Below are positions 38,779 through 46,068 of a stretch of DNA of 64,000 bases, piece by piece. Every line of letters starts with the position of its first letter. The stretch's first letter is position 1. Source of the stretch: Eutreptiella sp. 'Long Island Sound 2002' (lineage: Eukaryota > Protista > Euglenida). The stretch is taken from NCBI GenBank assembly GCA_964036045.1, contig OZ038378.1, positions 167,028,001 through 167,092,000 of the forward strand, read 5' to 3'. The notes below the pieces were generated by a model, which ran no database searches, was not told the origin of the DNA, and worked only from the letters and a program-made list of their open reading frames with translations. The translations under genes and the position numbers were made by a program.

Positions 38779-39573
38779 CTTGCACTAACACTCTGAGGGG
38801 GGGCCATGATGGCCAAAAACGTAGACAATTTTCGCTGCTGGCCGCATGCTCCGAAAACCCTCACAAAACAGCTCCCGTTCTATGACAACACGAAAGCACG
38901 CACAAAACCGCATACTACAGATCGAAGGGCATCAGTAGAGCTTCGATTTGGTCGGGGGGTGGCCTCGTACCTCAGCGCTATATTTGTGCTGCGCCAAATT
39001 CCGTAAGGTCCACAATTGAAAAAAAGCACTTTTTTCGCCCAAACTAGTCTCCCTCCAACGGACGTATCTCAGCGCCACCGGGTCGTTTGGAGCTAATTTT
39101 TTTTTTCTGCGACCCTTGGAGCTGGCCGGAGGTACTAGTGCTTGAATACGGGTCAGATGAACCACAGGCGGGGCGCTATTTCTGTCGCCAGTTGACCCGC
39201 GTTTCGAAAATTGCCGTTTTTTACCCAACAACTTGACCCCTTCACCAAACAGCCAAAACGGATCGGTTTTTCGAAATTCCAATTGCTATATGGATCATTT
39301 TTCAATGCCGTTCACAAATCTGCGGTCGGATCTTGATTTCCTGAAAATCCGTTTTTCGTGATTTTTTTTCCACATCCTAGGATTCTGACAGAATTTTCAA
39401 AAAGGGCTCAAGTGTTGTCGTAGGCCTCAGCCGGCCATCCACCGATGTGGGGTCTGTTGGTCCCCAACGCCGTTCTAAATTAGCAACGCTGCAGAAAAGT
39501 TTGCTGACATAACAATTGCGGTTGTCAATTGTCAACCATCGGGCGTGGCGGGGCCCCTCCCCCACCGCTAGCA
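38779..39573. repeat. Second copy of the 0.8-kb repeat, split by the retrotransposon and resuming at 45903
   Basis: Homology to 36459-37245 stops at the left TSD and resumes after the right TSD (cacgggagggagcg). Confidence 0.85.
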
Positions 39574-39574
39574 G

Positions 39575-39603
39575 ACACTCTCTGAGTGTCTATTTTTTTT
39601 TCG
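39575..39603 (+). other. Euglenid spliced-leader exon sequence at the element's 5' end
   Basis: ACACTCTCTGAGTGTCTATTTTTTTTTCG versus the euglenid SL as recalled from the literature (ACACTTTCTGAGTGTCTATTTTTTTTCG): one substitution and one extra T. Confidence 0.9.
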
Positions 39604-39643
39604 GTTGTATTATTTCTGCCATGTGCAACCCCGTTTGGGGTGA

Positions 39644-40225
39644 ATGAAACGTACAACCGCAGCGAAAGCGCCCGGGTCCACAGGCCGCGCCAGTGCCGAC
39701 ACCCGAGTGATGGATCGCACTCAGGGAGCAGATGTTCTCGTGGAGACGGATAGCAAGCAGCTTGCTACTCTCACTGGGATTGATGATGCTGACTATTTCA
39801 TTCAAGAAGAGTTTTTTTTGAGGGCTGGTACTTCCATTGCGGACACTGTCCCGTCCTACAAGCTGGCATCTCTGCTAAAGTCTGACTCCGCCACGGTACA
39901 AAAAGCTTTTCGGGGCCAGGAGCCCTACATTGTTCTATGTGCTCATATGTCTGAAATTGCGAATATCAACAGGGCTGTTGCTATGCTTACGGAGAATCTG
40001 CGAGCGGTGGGGGAAATCTCATTGGTGCTGCTTGAAGGGGTCTGTGACAATCCAGATGTGTTCTTGAACAGAGCTCTGACTGTCAAGGAGAGCGCGACGG
40101 TCAATCCAGCGATGCTACAGCTGGCAGACAGGCCTCTGATTACCAAGAAACAGCAGTATTCAGTATGGGTAATTCATACCACGACTGCGAGCAGGCTGAC
40201 GCGTGCCCAGCCTAAATTCCGGTAA
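39644..40225 (+). CDS. Retrotransposon ORF1, N-terminal part (193 aa, unknown function)
   Basis: Open frame 40 nt after the SL. Same frame as 40232-41278, separated by a single TAA. Confidence 0.7.
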   Translation: MKRTTAAKAPGSTGRASADTRVMDRTQGADVLVETDSKQLATLTGIDDADYFIQEEFFLRAGTSIADTVPSYKLASLLKSDSATVQKAFRGQEPYIVLCAHMSEIANINRAVAMLTENLRAVGEISLVLLEGVCDNPDVFLNRALTVKESATVNPAMLQLADRPLITKKQQYSVWVIHTTTASRLTRAQPKFR

Positions 40226-40231
40226 ATTCGC

Positions 40232-41278
40232 ATGTTTGCCCCGGGGGATGAGCCCAATGTTATAGTCTTCAAGGTGCCAAAGGAGGAAGAGAAGATGATG
40301 GTACTTCAGTACCATGTACAGTGGGAGCAGGAACTTTTCGACAGTCTGTCTATTCAGAAAACGGAGGCGGTGCTGGTTCCTGGGGCAGATCCGGGACAGT
40401 CCAGATACTTATTTTGCCAATTGTCTTTAGACCATGCGCACGAGCTTGTGCGACTGTATGGCAATAGAGCCCGGTTTGGCATCATGCCGCTGAAATGGTA
40501 TCAGGGGGACGCGGTGGACGATCTTCCAAGAAGGTTTGAAGTTTACGTCGGTGCAGAGGTACGTGCGAAACACGCACCGTTTATGTTTGCCTATCTGCTG
40601 TCGCTGTTTTGGGAGCTCCGGCCCAATGGGCTCTTGGCAGCACAATCGGGTGTGGCTATTCAAGTGGTTGGGTACAATAAAGTTCGACTGGGACTGTCTG
40701 ACGCTGCGCACAACGTGCTGGTGGAACAGTTGGACAAGTGCTCCTCGCAGTATGGCCTTAAATTCAAAGATGAGGGTTCAGGGGAGTTTGTTGGCCAGGG
40801 TGACACGTACATACAGCCGCCAGCTGAGTGGGGACCGGCAGATAACTTGTTCCTGATCAATGTGCCGCCGTGGTGGGGGGAAAAGGCGATCGTGGCAATC
40901 ATGCAAACCTCTGAAGTTGAGAAACTTATTGTGCGACGCATGAGATGGTCGGTGGGTGAGATACGCACCCTCACGTGGAAAGTGTGTGTGCCGCAGGCAG
41001 AAACGCCCAAAATTCTGGGATCTGTGTTCCGAGGATCCGAAGGAGACTTCCTGATGCAGGTCATTTCTCAACCTGAGTATGCCATGCGTAGGGAGCGCGG
41101 CAATCCTAAAGGTGGAGGCAAAGGAAGAGGCAAAGGGGGAGCCGGCTCCAGTAGTGCGTCTGTGTCGTCGTCGCGTAGCTACAGTTCAGTGGCATCGTCT
41201 GGTGCCTCCACGTCAGTGGCGTCATCGGCTGCCATGGAGTGTGATGTGGATCTGAAGTTCAACAAGCGAAAGCGATGA
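40232..41278 (+). CDS. Retrotransposon ORF1, main part (348 aa, putative RNA-binding, gag-like)
   Basis: RRM-like segments (NVIVFKVP, NLFLINVP), KGGGKGRGKGG basic/RG tail, Ser-rich end. The stop overlaps the ORF2 ATG (ATGA). Confidence 0.75.
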   Translation: MFAPGDEPNVIVFKVPKEEEKMMVLQYHVQWEQELFDSLSIQKTEAVLVPGADPGQSRYLFCQLSLDHAHELVRLYGNRARFGIMPLKWYQGDAVDDLPRRFEVYVGAEVRAKHAPFMFAYLLSLFWELRPNGLLAAQSGVAIQVVGYNKVRLGLSDAAHNVLVEQLDKCSSQYGLKFKDEGSGEFVGQGDTYIQPPAEWGPADNLFLINVPPWWGEKAIVAIMQTSEVEKLIVRRMRWSVGEIRTLTWKVCVPQAETPKILGSVFRGSEGDFLMQVISQPEYAMRRERGNPKGGGKGRGKGGAGSSSASVSSSRSYSSVASSGASTSVASSAAMECDVDLKFNKRKR

Positions 41279-44200
41279 TCTCTCTTTCCTTAATGAGCCG
41301 ACGTTGGGCGGCGGTAACCACCAACGTCAATGGGTGGCATAGGAAGCCACCGGATAAGGCGGAAATGCGTAAAGTTCTGTTGATCCGTATGCTGAGACAG
41401 CATCATGTGGACATAGCGGCAGTGCAGGAGCACCATATCACCACACAACCGGTGCTCGATTCGCAAAAGCTGTGGGCGGAGAAGCGAGGGTATGGGTTGG
41501 CGGCAGTGCCGACCCCAACTAACATGCGTGGTGGGGTGTTATTAATGTGGAGGACCCCAATGTGGGAATTGCAGTCGGCGGAGTACATTGGACATCGACT
41601 TATTGTAGCTGTGCTCAAGCATGTGTCGGGGGACTCCATACAAGTGCTCGCGGGGCATTTACATCACGATGCGCCTCAGCGACAAAAACAATGGGAGCAA
41701 CTGGGAAGGCGATTGAGCCCAGCAGGGGCCCCACTGATCGCGCTGTGCGATCACAACTCCCATATAATTCCGGGAGTGGACAGTGAAGGAATGAAGGAAA
41801 GTAAATTAAAAACACAGCTCAATGACAAGGCTAGGCAGCGGGAGGTCCAGGTACTGGAAAAGTGTAAGTTGCATGATGCATGGGATGTTCTGTATGGCGA
41901 GTGTGATGACCGCCCGAATGGGTTCACGTACGGGTGGGTGCAGAAGCCTGAGGTGAGATGGAAGCCCAGACGACTAGACAGGGTGCATGTGGCAGACTCC
42001 CTACGGGAATATGTCCAAGGAGTGTACACCACAACAGCAGTGGCTTCCGACCACAAGGCAGTGGTGGTGCAATTTGAGCAACCGCCGATGCGCAGGGTGC
42101 AACCGCGTCTGCGGTTCCCAACAGAAATGTTAAGTGATCAGTCAGCAGTGGACAACCTACGAGGTCTGTTGCAGGGATTGCAGGCGCCAGACTCGCAAAA
42201 TGTGTTCCAGTGGTGGAATGAAGCTGAGGCAATCATTCAAGAGCAAGGGGTCCAGTGGCGACGAATGAATCCACGAGAAGATCACTTGCCAATACAGGGC
42301 ATTCTGCGATTGTCATCCCCCGGAAGGGTGATCCCGGCTGGGTGGGAATATTTGGCAGACAAAGGGGTCTGCCCTGAAACATCAGCTCAGGCGTACCAGT
42401 TGCTGGTGGTATATGCTGACCGGGAGGCCAAAGACTCTCAAAGGCAATCACTGTGTCATATGCTCAAGGAGGAGCTTCTCAGCAAGCGGCAAGAGGCTGC
42501 TACACAGGCTGAACGCCGGAGGAAGGTACATGTACAATTGAGGGAGTTGCAAGCCAAGAGGCAGCTGTATGGTATCAAGAACAAACAGGGGGTGTACTGC
42601 ACACGGCCGCAAGACATCGCGACCGCATTTAAGGAATTCTGGGAGCAAGTCATGAAAAAACCAGACCAGTCGGTAGAACAGTGCAGAGAGTGGATGGAAG
42701 GTCTGGGGATACCGCGCAGGGTGCGACAGGCATTGCCCAAGCTGACAAAGGAAGTGTCCGAGGACACGGTGCAGGCTGCGCTCGAGCGCATGAAGAAGGG
42801 ATCGTCGCCGGGATTAGACGGGATCCCGGTTGAGGTCTACTCAGCAATGGCAGAGGTGTTCATCCCTCCTATGACTATGGCGATCAAAAGTTGTCTTCAA
42901 CAGCGTCAGGTGCCAGCACAATGGCTGGTGAGCTTGCAGCGAAATATACCAAAGGGTCGGGCAGCGGACACAGTTGGCGAGATGCGACCTATTGCATTAC
43001 AGACGGTGATTTGGAAATGGATGGCTACAACCATCCTAGTCCTCATAGAGGACGCGTTGCAGGTAGCAGTGCCACCAGCCCAAAAGGGGTTTTTGAAAAA
43101 TAGACAAATGCTCCAGCACATAATAAACGCCAAGGGCCTGTGGCACTCGGAGACAGAGGGCACATTTCTGTCAGTGGACTTCGCCAAAGCTTATGATTCA
43201 GTATCACACAGCTTCTTTGCAGTAGGCATGCAGTTCTTGGGAATGCCGACTGAGATCACAGAGCTTCTAGTGCATTCACTGTCAGGACAGGTGCAGTTCT
43301 GTGTGGACAATGGTGTGGTTCCTGGCATTTCCATGCAGCCGGAGTCTGGGATTCGCCAAGGCGACCCACTATCTCCGCCAATCTTTGCGTTACTAACAGT
43401 CTTCCTGGTGTTCCAGTTCCGGAAACGGTGTCCGGAAGCACAGCTAATGCTGTATGCAGATGACTTATTAATATGGATACCTGGGGGGGATGAGGAAGCT
43501 CTGAAACAGGCAGAACGAGCTATGAGTCTGCTCAATGAGTTCGGGAAATTCTCGGGACTACATGTCAATCCGTCCAAGTCTTTTGCGGTACTCAAACGGG
43601 CGTGCGGTCCGTTGCCAGAGCGCTATGTTGGGTTGGAAGTGCGGGAAAGAGTCAAGTACTTGGGTGTTTTAATTGGACAGGTGAATGCGGAGCAGGCTTA
43701 TGCTGGTCCAATGGCTAAAATGAAGTCCAGGGCGACTTTTCTGAAAACATTACCATTAGATCTGTGGGAACGTGCTGAAATCTACAAGGTGTGGGTGCAG
43801 CCTGTAGTGCAGTTAACAGCACAAGTGTATGAACCATCAAAGAAGGTGTTGACGACTCTCAATGTTATATTCAAAATTGCCTTGGGGATCTCCACGTGGG
43901 ACCTCAGCCCAGCGATGTTGGCGCTGCCGTACAACCACGGTGGAGTGTGGACGTACCCACTGGCTGTCTGGGTGCGATTTCAGTATGGGCGCTTGTTCCA
44001 AACTGTTCTAAAGGATAAAGTGTGCTTCTCAGGCCAATGGGTAGCGAATTTCGAACAGTGGGCGGAGTCAATTGGGCTGTCCCTGAGGCCATCTTTCTTG
44101 CCATATCTGCAGCTAGCTGTGGTAAAACTGAGCGCGCGAACGTGGCTGCAAGCATCAGTGCTCATGTTTTCGCGGTTGCGGGCGGCAGCTCCGCCCTTGG

Positions 44201-44280
44201 TGGGAATACCCAGCAACATGCCGCTGTGGCACAACGTGCTCTTCAGAAACAAATTGGGGCATCGTGCGCAAGGGGATTAG
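41275..44280 (+). CDS. Retrotransposon ORF2: APE endonuclease and reverse transcriptase (continues by frameshift)
   Basis: APE motifs TNVNG, DIAAVQEHH, CDHN, RLDRV, SDHKAV. RT motifs SPGLDG, RPIAL, VDFAKAYDSV, GIRQGDPLSP, LYADDL, GLHVNPSKS, KYLGV. Confidence 0.95.
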   Translation: MISLSLMSRRWAAVTTNVNGWHRKPPDKAEMRKVLLIRMLRQHHVDIAAVQEHHITTQPVLDSQKLWAEKRGYGLAAVPTPTNMRGGVLLMWRTPMWELQSAEYIGHRLIVAVLKHVSGDSIQVLAGHLHHDAPQRQKQWEQLGRRLSPAGAPLIALCDHNSHIIPGVDSEGMKESKLKTQLNDKARQREVQVLEKCKLHDAWDVLYGECDDRPNGFTYGWVQKPEVRWKPRRLDRVHVADSLREYVQGVYTTTAVASDHKAVVVQFEQPPMRRVQPRLRFPTEMLSDQSAVDNLRGLLQGLQAPDSQNVFQWWNEAEAIIQEQGVQWRRMNPREDHLPIQGILRLSSPGRVIPAGWEYLADKGVCPETSAQAYQLLVVYADREAKDSQRQSLCHMLKEELLSKRQEAATQAERRRKVHVQLRELQAKRQLYGIKNKQGVYCTRPQDIATAFKEFWEQVMKKPDQSVEQCREWMEGLGIPRRVRQALPKLTKEVSEDTVQAALERMKKGSSPGLDGIPVEVYSAMAEVFIPPMTMAIKSCLQQRQVPAQWLVSLQRNIPKGRAADTVGEMRPIALQTVIWKWMATTILVLIEDALQVAVPPAQKGFLKNRQMLQHIINAKGLWHSETEGTFLSVDFAKAYDSVSHSFFAVGMQFLGMPTEITELLVHSLSGQVQFCVDNGVVPGISMQPESGIRQGDPLSPPIFALLTVFLVFQFRKRCPEAQLMLYADDLLIWIPGGDEEALKQAERAMSLLNEFGKFSGLHVNPSKSFAVLKRACGPLPERYVGLEVRERVKYLGVLIGQVNAEQAYAGPMAKMKSRATFLKTLPLDLWERAEIYKVWVQPVVQLTAQVYEPSKKVLTTLNVIFKIALGISTWDLSPAMLALPYNHGGVWTYPLAVWVRFQYGRLFQTVLKDKVCFSGQWVANFEQWAESIGLSLRPSFLPYLQLAVVKLSARTWLQASVLMFSRLRAAAPPLVGIPSNMPLWHNVLFRNKLGHRAQGD

Positions 44281-45733
44281 CACTTTGGCACAAATTGTGG
44301 AGGGAGGAGAGTTGCAGGCGGCGGTGAAACTACCTCCGACATGAACGCCGGTGTATCGGACGAAAATACCACAAGTGCTTGCTTTACCGGTGCAGGATTT
44401 GCCTAAAGTGTGGACGCAACCAAATCAGAAAATGCTAGCAGTGCTTTGCCCGCTGGAGCCGCCACAAAAACGGCAGGAGCCAGAGGTGTGGGAACAGTTA
44501 GCACAACTCAAGCTACCGGGGGCGCAACGAGATTTCATGCGAAGGGCGCTGTGGAAAAAGCTAGCAGTGGGGGCGCGCACGCAGCACGCATATCATCAGC
44601 CCAACTGCATTTTATGCTCTGTACCCGAAACTATCAAACATGTGCTTGCAGCGTGCAAATTCTGGCCAGTGGCCGTGGATATTGTGCGTAAAGCCTTTGG
44701 CCCGGTATGGGGCCGAGACGGGGCCATGTGCCCCATGGATACGTTGCTTGTGGCTCAGCCACTGTTATCGCTGAGCACCACGCAGGGACTGGCGCTATGG
44801 GCGGCGGCGAGAGCGTCCTGGGTCCTGCGATGTGATGCAAAATTTAGATCGTTGTCGGTGGCAATGCCTGACTTTGTAGTAGCCTGGATGACACTTGTAG
44901 AGGTGTGGGCGTCAGCACCACAGTCATCATTTGTGAGGCAAGAGGCCAAGCATCTGTGCAACTGTCTAAGGAAATTCTTGGATGGAGATCAGCCATTTCC
45001 CTCCATGCAGCCACAGGGGGCAATTGTCAGAGGACGGGGGGTACAAGTGCCAAAAAAGGCAAAATGGGCATCGGTTTTGCCGGGCCTGCTGCAGAGAATT
45101 GACGCTAAAGCACAGCAAGGATGGGATGTGGCTTTTGTTGATGGGTCCAAGCAGGAGACAGGTGGTGTGCATCATGCAGGCTATGGTGTGTGGTTTGGGG
45201 ACAATGACGCTCGCAATGAGGAGCTGCCGCTATTGAACACAGAGCGGCAATCTATAACTCGGGCAGAGCTAAGAGCAGCCCTTCGGGCTGTATATCATAA
45301 ATGCCCCGGACGGCCTCTCCTGGTGGTGACAGACTCGGAACTGGTGTATAAAGGGTTAACAGGAAAATGCAACAAGTGGTCCAGGCACAAATGGGTGGGC
45401 TCCAGGGGACCGCTGGCACATGTTGATCTGTGGGAGGATTTGTGGGGGCAGTGGCAGCTACTAGGGGACAGTGTCGATGTGCTATGGGTGCCGTCACATG
45501 TGGGGGTCACGGGAAATGAGCATGCAGACGCCAAGGCGTCCAAGGGAGCGAGAAAGGCATATGAATGTGTCATGAAACAAAAATCAGTGCAGGATATCTG
45601 GGGGGAGTTGGGACTGCAGGAAATGCCTGACTCGTATGACACGGATTCAAACTGCTCGGGGGGGTCCCACATTTCAGAGGAATTAAATGAGGACAACTCA
45701 GAGAACTGGCCCAAGCGGTGTCGGTACAGCTAA
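44264..45733 (+). pseudogene. ORF2 C-terminal part: zinc knuckle (zf-RVT-like) and RNase H1, cut off by a frameshift (~44263) and a TGA (44342-44344)
   Basis: CILCSVPETIKHVLAAC. RNase H acidic residues in VDGS, RAEL, TDS, NEHAD, plus WVPSH. The frame from 44264 reads VRKGISTLAQIVEGG...PT*TPVYRTK. Confidence 0.85.
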
Positions 45734-46010
45734 TCGGGGCCATGGGGAGGGCAGAGTGAGGTGACCTGCGAACAATGCTATGTCTGTGAACAAACAGTGC
45801 TGCAGTGCAGCAGAACAATGTTGTTGGCGATGACCTATGACCTGTGTCAAGGGGGTCATATGGTAGCTGAGTATCCGTTGCTTCACACCCCCACCGCTAG
45901 CACGGGAGGGAGCGCGGCATAAACGCCGCGTAAGCAAAAAAAAAAAAGAGAGACGTGCTTGCATGCACGGCACTGTTGAGCCATACTGTAACCTGCACCT
46001 GCGGGAGGGG

Positions 46011-46014
<4 letters not shown>

Positions 46015-46068
<54 letters not shown>
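46015..46068. repeat. (AG)27 microsatellite
   Basis: Direct reading of the sequence. Confidence 0.95.

Follow-up and report, generated by a model that had tools for sequence, protein, structure and literature searches.

A non-long-terminal-repeat (non-LTR) retrotransposon of the euglenid Eutreptiella sp. 'Long Island Sound 2002' opens with a single G followed by a complete spliced leader (SL), the exon that host mRNAs carry. We identified it in a stretch of 64,000 nucleotides of contig OZ038378.1 (positions 167,028,001 to 167,092,000 of the forward strand), hereafter called the window. All the evidence considered, the leader was probably captured once, by trans-splicing of an ancestral element RNA, and has since been inherited in the element's DNA as a hard-wired 5′ head. 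A first-pass annotation of the window had interpreted this copy as the product of a freshly trans-spliced, capped RNA and had offered a hard-wired SL end as the alternative. It is this alternative that we favour, since we found no outron-bearing source, since the G is constant in the family and since the CG at the end of the leader is not a splice acceptor.

The insert lies between two perfect copies of a target-site duplication (CCCCCACCGCTAGCA), measures 6,314 bp and is structurally full-length. The duplication is exactly 15 bp long: the adjoining outer bases differ (t/a before, g/c after). From its 5′ copy inwards come the G, the 29-nt leader and a body that starts with GTTGTATT, in agreement with the first reading of the sequence. 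Using the 5′ flank, one copy of the duplication and the 3′ flank as a query, the reconstructed empty site was found elsewhere in the genome nine times exactly and 49 times with up to three mismatches (control, 0). It reads ...TAGCA/CGGG, without the G of position 39574. These uninterrupted target paralogues demonstrate that the insertion boundaries are real, that the G, which had been described as non-templated, belongs to the insert and not to the target DNA, and that the insert runs exactly from this G to ...ACA. Contigs of the public runs X3 (record 6) and X6 (record 21) span the flank, the G, the variant SL and the body (39434/39440-39610) with zero differences; both runs perhaps come from the assembly's own sample and were not counted as independent. 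Other public-run contigs exit the window at 39573 and resume with the sequence following 45902. The empty site is stronger evidence for the junction than the bridging contigs, and both support the junction and the duplication against a misassembly.

The window leader reads ACACTCTCTGAGTGTCTATTTTTTTTTCG. The host SL, which is of the Euglena gracilis type, is given by the SL-RNA genes (L001-L009 and L011), which read ACACTTTCTGAGTGTCTATTTTTTTTCG and then GTATATACTCGC, with ...GGT preceding the SL. Compared with it, the window leader has a C for the T at position 6 and a run of nine T where the host SL has eight, so that both deviations proposed at first pass are borne out by the genes themselves. 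The leader begins at the SL exon start and stops exactly at the exon boundary (...TTTCG), with neither SL-RNA intron nor SL-gene remainder behind it, as is characteristic of SL-tagged retrocopies. Given this exact boundary and the missing SL intron, an origin of the head by trans-splicing of an ancestral element RNA appears to be sound. The 19-nt SL core has a single match in the window and none in shuffled sequences. Elsewhere, the C at position 6 was found only in eight SL-RNA-gene-like loci, where the SL continues with GTAAGTA, GTAACTA, GTGTATA or GTATAAC and one cluster of which lies on contig C6; the window is the sole retrocopy with this C genome-wide. These minor loci, with their divergent intron starts (GTAAGTA, GTAACTA), include C6:126752289-126764370, C9:33210204, C16:22269925 and C21:7628569. 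The GT after the SL and the 5′ hairpin, which had been put forward as traits of a possible SL mimic, are both present in the window. The GT proved to be specific to this element family, as other SL-headed families continue with AT, AC or GC, and the hairpin is formed by the 5′ stem that the SL itself has, which the extra G extends.

The head is constant throughout the family. The first 198 nt after the SL gave 26 matches in the 2.28-Gb assembly, 20 at 94-100% identity and six at 70-76%, most copies being examined over about 3 kb per locus, and a complete SL stands at the identical junction in 24 of the 26. The two exceptions are L045, where the SL is 5′-truncated and joined to the 3′ end of another element, and L056, where the hairpin part of the SL is inverted (GACACCCAGAAAGTGTC in place of GACACTTTCTGGGTGTC at L056:1516-1645, minus strand, with the T-run and the body in normal orientation). 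An independent pattern search with the 5′ untranslated region (UTR) start and ten free upstream bases returned exactly 20 sites, all directly after ...TTTTTTTCG. No outron, polypyrimidine-AG acceptor or other upstream sequence was found among all matches to the family's 5′ UTR start. An SL-less parent locus with an outron and an AG is likewise missing among these matches, which is the feature that separates a heritable SL head from a one-off retrocopy.

The 20 family copies lie in 20 different flanks. In a tree of the first 1.7 kb, the copies split into at least two subfamilies that differ by about 10%, and each of these comprises several insertions whose flanks differ; SL-headed lineages therefore kept yielding SL-headed offspring. 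Relatives with about 70% DNA identity also keep the G and the SL. So does L058, a relative from another assembly with 51% ORF1 identity, which has its own 16-bp duplication, the same 3′ end, the upstream open reading frame (ORF) and the CCCC-N4-GGGG hairpin, and in which the CG of the SL reads GG. At least three diverged lineages thus all propagate with the head, which supports its being hard-wired. The window alone carries the C at position 6, the other family copies having the canonical SL, and its private divergence is 0.8%. SL variants among the 20 copies are private or recurrent in unrelated copies, T-run lengths being unreliable. The first-pass annotation had named the lack of an outron-bearing master, together with one identical variant SL in every copy, as the mark of a hard-wired end. 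By this rule the missing master supports that end, although the variant itself is not shared. Outside this genome, in a comparison in which other euglenids are not represented, the relatives P0008 (L057, 1.6 kb) and P0012 (L059, 6 kb) have no euglenid SL upstream. The latter, a metagenome contig with 40% reverse transcriptase (RT) identity, shows CCCTAA repeats of the telomere type, six in number, some 200 nt upstream of its ORF1 (L059:220-260) and may be a telomere-associated long interspersed element (LINE) of another organism.

The extra G stands directly before the SL in 19 of 22 scorable family copies, and lies outside the duplication wherever this can be judged (window, L036, L037, L046, L048 and L058). 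Among 100 copies of the largest other SL-headed family, 'ATTGA', the preceding base is C in 45, G in 25, T in 17 and A in 13. This family, in which the SL is followed by ATTGACCCTCAG, is the commonest SL-headed one in the sample, and the C before the SL in these 45 of 100 complete copies is at twice the expectation from even composition. For 27 dispersed complete SLs on contig C1, counted by hand with a four-fold repeated unit left out, the corresponding numbers are C 13, G 8, A 4 and T 2. The G is a trait of this element family and not general to SL-headed copies. Cap copying is established as the source of an extra 5′ G in full-length L1 insertions; here, the G may be handed down as part of the head, in which case it is perhaps the founding RNA's cap in copied form, or it may be added anew each time by the family's enzyme. 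That GG heads are missing lends mild support to transcripts beginning at the A that regain a single G, or to an enzyme by which the cap is seldom copied.

The genome contains many other SL copies. The 19-nt core has 8,280 genomic matches with at most one mismatch (control, 1), about 1,700 of which are SL-RNA genes in arrays, while about 6,500 (about 80%) are not SL-RNA genes. The first 100 exact SL sites of contig C1 comprise about 12 genes, and the rest belong to at least 15 recurrent families, each with a fixed junction. Apart from the SL, no DNA is common to this element and the remaining SL-headed loci (L010-L030). Where an ORF directly behind the SL could be recognised, it encodes an OTU protease (L010) or a C-type lectin domain (L012/L023). 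The SL-RNA genes form large loose arrays with a spacing of 1.6 to 60 kb, several of them near contig ends (C1:29k-458k, C2:22k-1.64M, C3:164.0-164.7M, C4:178.6-179.4M and C9:24k-1.07M), and at least two different sequences, ACAGAGAGGT and TAGCAGGGGT, precede the SL in them.

Some of these copies carry tandem relics of earlier leaders. Transcription of an SL-headed copy from outside, with renewed trans-splicing at the AG inside its old leader, leaves an SL followed by the remaining 16-nt tail, TGTCTATTTTTTTTCG. This arrangement was found at 104 sites (control, 0), or 1-2% of the non-gene SL sites, for example at C1:55396078-55396119, C2:169035774-169035831, C5:86359048-86359089 and C10:43091979-43092020. 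The SL is followed by one to three copies of the tail, and some relics are three or four deep. There were none in the 26 copies of this element family. Two complete SLs separated by a short fixed spacer (GACCATGTTCACTG) were also observed at C1:62485347-62485446, C1:114058395 and C1:158792044, with a 25-nt spacer in an X3/X6 contig; these copies look as if a second trans-splicing had used an AG located a few bases before the old head.

We infer a single ancient capture. The leader would have been gained by trans-splicing of an ancestral element RNA, the G perhaps being its copied cap, and the G and the SL would thereafter have been part of the element DNA, passed from copy to copy. Judged by the constancy of the head and the lack of any other source, new element RNAs would start at the head, the G and the SL acting with the conserved 5′ UTR as an internal start signal, and the head would give these RNAs the leader that host mRNAs carry for translation. 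Several points weigh against this scenario. The run labelled as RNA, X1, an estuary metatranscriptome, yielded two short contigs, both within the element and neither of them reaching across the head, which is no proof of transcription, and we know of no SL sequence with demonstrated promoter activity in euglenids. Subfamilies 10-30% apart have one and the same SL consensus, which refreshing in each cycle explains as well as selection does, and the private SL variants, not common to sister copies, fit both models. The C at position 6 of the window leader is also that of a minor variant of the SL-RNA genes. From the relic leaders it is certain that some SL-headed retrocopies were transcribed from outside and trans-spliced again, and a source copy could lie in unassembled DNA.

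Some of these points speak in favour of trans-splicing in each cycle, which we consider rather unlikely, though well worth weighing. An outron-bearing source, a hidden master included, or a read-through RNA would receive a fresh capped SL, be translated and be reverse-transcribed up to the cap, which would supply the G as in L1; all SL-headed genomic copies would then be end products. The exact exon boundary without a following SL intron is explained in this way, as are a consensus that has not drifted with the bodies and variants that sister copies do not inherit. The eight SL-RNA-gene-like loci with C at position 6 suggest a variant SL RNA as a possible donor. Host-like genes, such as those with the lectin and protease ORFs, are SL-headed too, and the 104 tandem relics attest to repeated trans-splicing and retroposition in this genome. 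Against this, neither an outron nor an AG acceptor was found at the junction in the 20 close copies, the six more distant ones and the further relative, and the CG/G junction of the DNA copies cannot serve as a splice acceptor, so that re-splicing would not occur at the same place. At least two propagating subfamilies would need several hidden masters, and the G is specific to this family, not a general trait of SL-headed copies. An SL fused at the element's first downstream AG, only one of several possible acceptors, had no genomic match. If read-through followed by trans-splicing were the usual route, relics would be common, and they occupy 104 of about 6,500 non-gene SL sites. Finally, the C at position 6 occurs in one retrocopy only, and a single transition in 29 nt fits the private divergence of the window copy. 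The first-pass proposal therefore stands as to an origin from a trans-spliced RNA. Fresh trans-splicing of this copy is not favoured, given the constant junction, the missing outron and the family-specific G, and neither is a life cycle coupled to trans-splicing, since the SL junction is identical in 20 of 20 copies and none has an outron.

The head could also have been joined by a template switch, in which the RT jumps from the 5′ end of an SL-less element RNA to an SL-bearing RNA, as in U6-L1 chimeras. The head-to-tail junctions of L013, L045 and L054 and the inverted hairpin head of L056 suggest that template jumps do occur in this genome, but jumps scatter, and here the junction falls on the same nucleotide in 26 copies and a distant relative. 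Moreover, the exon is present without any part of the SL-RNA intron, and a jump to another mRNA would import the sequence past its SL, which makes this origin very improbable. An artefact of assembly, or a site-specific insertion into an SL-RNA gene of the SLACS/CZAR/CRE/NeSL type, has nothing in its favour beyond SL sequence lying beside a retroelement, and practically no chance of being correct. The bridging contigs show no differences, the 49 target paralogues are uninterrupted and contain no SL gene, the SL lies inside the duplication, the endonuclease is not restriction-like and the 20 copies have 20 different flanks. Both possibilities were thus ruled out.

In a wider form of the hard-wired reading, an SL written into DNA would act as a portable start signal for RNA polymerase, and LINE families would use it as internal promoter and translation leader. 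This generalization is possible though doubtful. The SL-RNA gene of Ascaris, which has an intragenic promoter element, offers a likeness to an SL acting as a start signal.

The features of the insert are listed in the table below.

Table. Features of the SL-headed retrotransposon and of its target-site duplication (window coordinates)
Feature	Position	Strand	Remarks
5′ copy of the 15-bp target-site duplication	39559..39573	+	Starts in a C-run; identical to 45888-45902; present as a single copy in empty-site paralogues
Extra G before the leader	39574..39574	+	Absent from the target; SL-RNA genes have T there; constant in the family
Spliced-leader exon, 29 nt	39575..39603	+	Host SL (28 nt) in a variant form; exon boundary CG exactly at its end
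5′ UTR body, starting with GTTGTATT	39604..39643	+	CCCC-N4-GGGG hairpin; stem of 39602-39610 with 39651-39659 encloses the start codons
Upstream ORF, 9 codons (8 sense + TGA)	39621..39647	+	TGA overlaps the ATG of ORF1 (ATGA)
ORF1	39644..41278	+	No Pfam domain; 544 aa in the intact relative P0001
ORF2, first part	41275..44280	+	APE-type endonuclease, about 41323-42054; reverse transcriptase, about 42946-43668
ORF2 frame break	44265..44350	+	Copy P0010 reads through in one frame
ORF2, second part	44351..45733	+	zf-RVT, about 44477-44662; RNase H, about 45131-45550
3′ UTR, ending ...GAGTATCCGTTGCTTCACA	45734..45887	+	No poly(A); C-run of the duplication directly after
3′ copy of the target-site duplication	45888..45902	+	Identity with 39559-39573

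The ATG noticed 17 nt past the SL at first pass opens the upstream ORF, a layout common to all aligned subfamilies. The 5′ fold has a z of -2.7, and copies of about 70% identity retain both its hairpin and its stem. ORF1 is broken by an in-frame TAA at 40223-40225, where all four aligned runs read C at 40223, and its stop overlaps the ORF2 start (ATGA, 41275-41278). Pfam searches of ORF2 identified an endonuclease of the apurinic/apyrimidinic endonuclease (APE) type (PF03372, Exo_endo_phos, 8.9e-08, 32.6 bits against a cut-off of 24.5, residues 17-260), a reverse transcriptase (PF00078, RVT_1, 2.4e-25) and an RNase H (PF00075, RNase_H, 2.5e-17), with a zf-RVT match (PF13966, 4.5e-05) under its cut-off. 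The APE-RT-RNase H order and the perfect duplication around 6,314 bp, both proposed from the sequence, are in agreement with these results. Residues 1-347 of P0010 match the first part of ORF2 and residues 384-843 the second. The element is coding-defective, through the ORF1 stop and the ORF2 frame break, and the description of this copy as full-length holds for its structure, complete with both ends, but not for its coding capacity.

Judged by its domains and best matches, the element is best classed as an APE-type non-LTR retrotransposon, L1-like. It combines a non-LTR RT and an N-terminal APE with a target-site duplication, no terminal repeats and mostly 5′-truncated copies. The best solved relative of its RT is human L1 ORF2p (2e-23), and the nearest named ones are plant L1-like proteins (23-30% identity). 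No poly(A) or A-rich tail was found, either in the window or among the 100 listed 3′ ends, which finish with ...GCTTCACA and then C's, and the element was therefore filed as L1-like and not as L1 proper. Rfam gave no match at the gathering threshold in the whole window, and with E values up to 10 only a chance snoRNA match in 39500-39900; neither a ribozyme nor an SL-RNA family was found at the head.

At least 1,719 genomic matches to the 3′-end motif compare with 20 complete 5′ ends, which is the usual pattern of LINE 5′ truncation, and nearly all listed 3′ ends run into CC(C)n. Of 22 scorable copies, 19 have a C-run of at least six in the 30 nt upstream of the head, and the longest upstream C-run averages 11.3, against 2.4 in control windows. 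By pairing the 5′ flanks of loci L031-L056 with 3′ flanks from a pattern search of 3′ ends, duplications of about 13-16 bp that start inside the C-run were obtained (window, L036, L037, L043, L046, L048, L049 and L058; 15-16 bp in L036, L037 and L058). The insertion target is thus a poly(C) tract. The target DNA of the window copy (39400-39573 and 45903-45960) is a dispersed or tandem repeat with 49 near-identical empty sites, several of them about 2.3 kb apart (e.g. C4:88914682-88921557), and downstream, at a distance of 115 bp from the insertion, there is a (GA)n microsatellite about 50 bp long (46017-46068). At the head-to-tail junctions L013, L045 and L054, the 3′ end of a related element (...AGTTTCCGTTGCCTCATGGCCC) is joined without a gap to a whole or 5′-truncated SL, and the loose end of an X5 contig at window position 39582 is of the same type, which suggests template jumps or insertion beside earlier tails.

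Insertion would proceed by target-primed reverse transcription. By analogy with L1, in which poly(A) pairs with a T-rich nick site, the endonuclease would nick the G-run on the bottom strand of a poly(C)/poly(G) tract, and the C-rich 3′ terminus of the RNA (...CACA then C's) would pair with this G-run. A second nick about 15 bp away would give rise to the duplication, and the cDNA would be extended to the very 5′ end of the element RNA.

The closest parallel is found in dinoflagellates, where retrogenes tagged with the DinoSL, or 'recycled cDNAs', have been described (Slamovits and Keeling 2008; PMC6050394, PMC5585692, PMC12014239), and a dinoflagellate review puts forward a possible promoter role for a retroposed leader (one of PMC6050394, PMC5585692 and PMC12014239). 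There, as here, genomic copies open with the SL exon of a reverse-transcribed, trans-spliced RNA, and tandem relics arise through repeated trans-splicing at the AG inside the old leader. In dinoflagellates, however, the tags have been reported from host genes and the responsible retroelement is unknown, whereas here an autonomous LINE is itself tagged, the tag is constant across diverged subfamilies, relics make up about 1-2% of sites, and the lineage (Euglenozoa) and the SL are different. A full-text literature search, with most subscription journals outside its scope, returned SL-tagged retrogenes and relic leaders only for dinoflagellates, Pr77 as an internal promoter of trypanosomatid LINEs, and nothing on SL-headed retroelements in euglenids, which is not proof of novelty.

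Within Euglenozoa, the L1Tc/ingi elements of trypanosomatids carry the Pr77 hallmark at their 5′ end (PMC1874656, PMC8190864). They are also APE-RT-RNase H LINEs in hosts whose genes depend on SL trans-splicing, and a short conserved 5′ terminal sequence common to the elements solves expression from within. Pr77 is element-specific and yields unspliced, SL-less, translatable transcripts, whereas the 5′ terminus of the present family is the host SL. In addition, L1 and plant L1-like proteins are closer to its RT than is any protein that bears the name ingi, and no ribozyme like that of hepatitis delta virus and no Rfam family was detected at its 5′ end. Compared with the L1 clade (human ORF2p 8c8j and 8uw3; plant L1), the element has the same APE, RT, C-terminal zinc-binding domain, RNase H and two ORFs, a duplication of about 15 bp and massive 5′ truncation. 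It differs in the low RT identity, the C-rich 3′ end without poly(A), the poly(C) target, an ORF1 without a recognisable domain, the ATGA-chained ORFs with a conserved upstream ORF and the host SL as head. SLACS, CZAR, CRE1/2 and NeSL-1 use a restriction-like endonuclease to enter SL-RNA genes, and the SL that flanks them is target DNA. They share with this family only the physical tie of a retroelement to SL sequence. As the annotation had stressed, the endonuclease here is of the APE type and the SL lies inside the duplication; the poly(C) targets are in unrelated repeats. No Pfam domain of the restriction-like endonuclease type was found downstream of the RT, the APE being upstream and the RNase H downstream of it, and a fixed insertion site in SL-RNA genes was not observed, the empty sites having no SL gene and the 20 unrelated flanks following C-runs.

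A LINE must carry everything needed for its expression in its own RNA, and how this is achieved in hosts that depend on trans-splicing was an open question. The L1Tc of trypanosomes uses its own Pr77 and leaderless RNAs, while this euglenid family has the host leader as its inherited 5′ end. If the leader was captured once, the tag of host mRNAs would have become a built-in, inherited part of a selfish element. If, further, the SL does act as a portable start signal, thousands of SL-headed retrocopies, host-like genes included, could be expressed and spread without promoters of their own or renewed trans-splicing. The SL is an unambiguous mark of RNA-derived DNA that can be counted family by family, and with about 6,500 of about 8,300 SL cores outside SL-RNA genes, retroposition of SL-bearing RNAs appears as a major builder of this genome. 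The recycled SL-tagged cDNAs known from dinoflagellates, relics included, thus have a second, independent occurrence in Euglenozoa.

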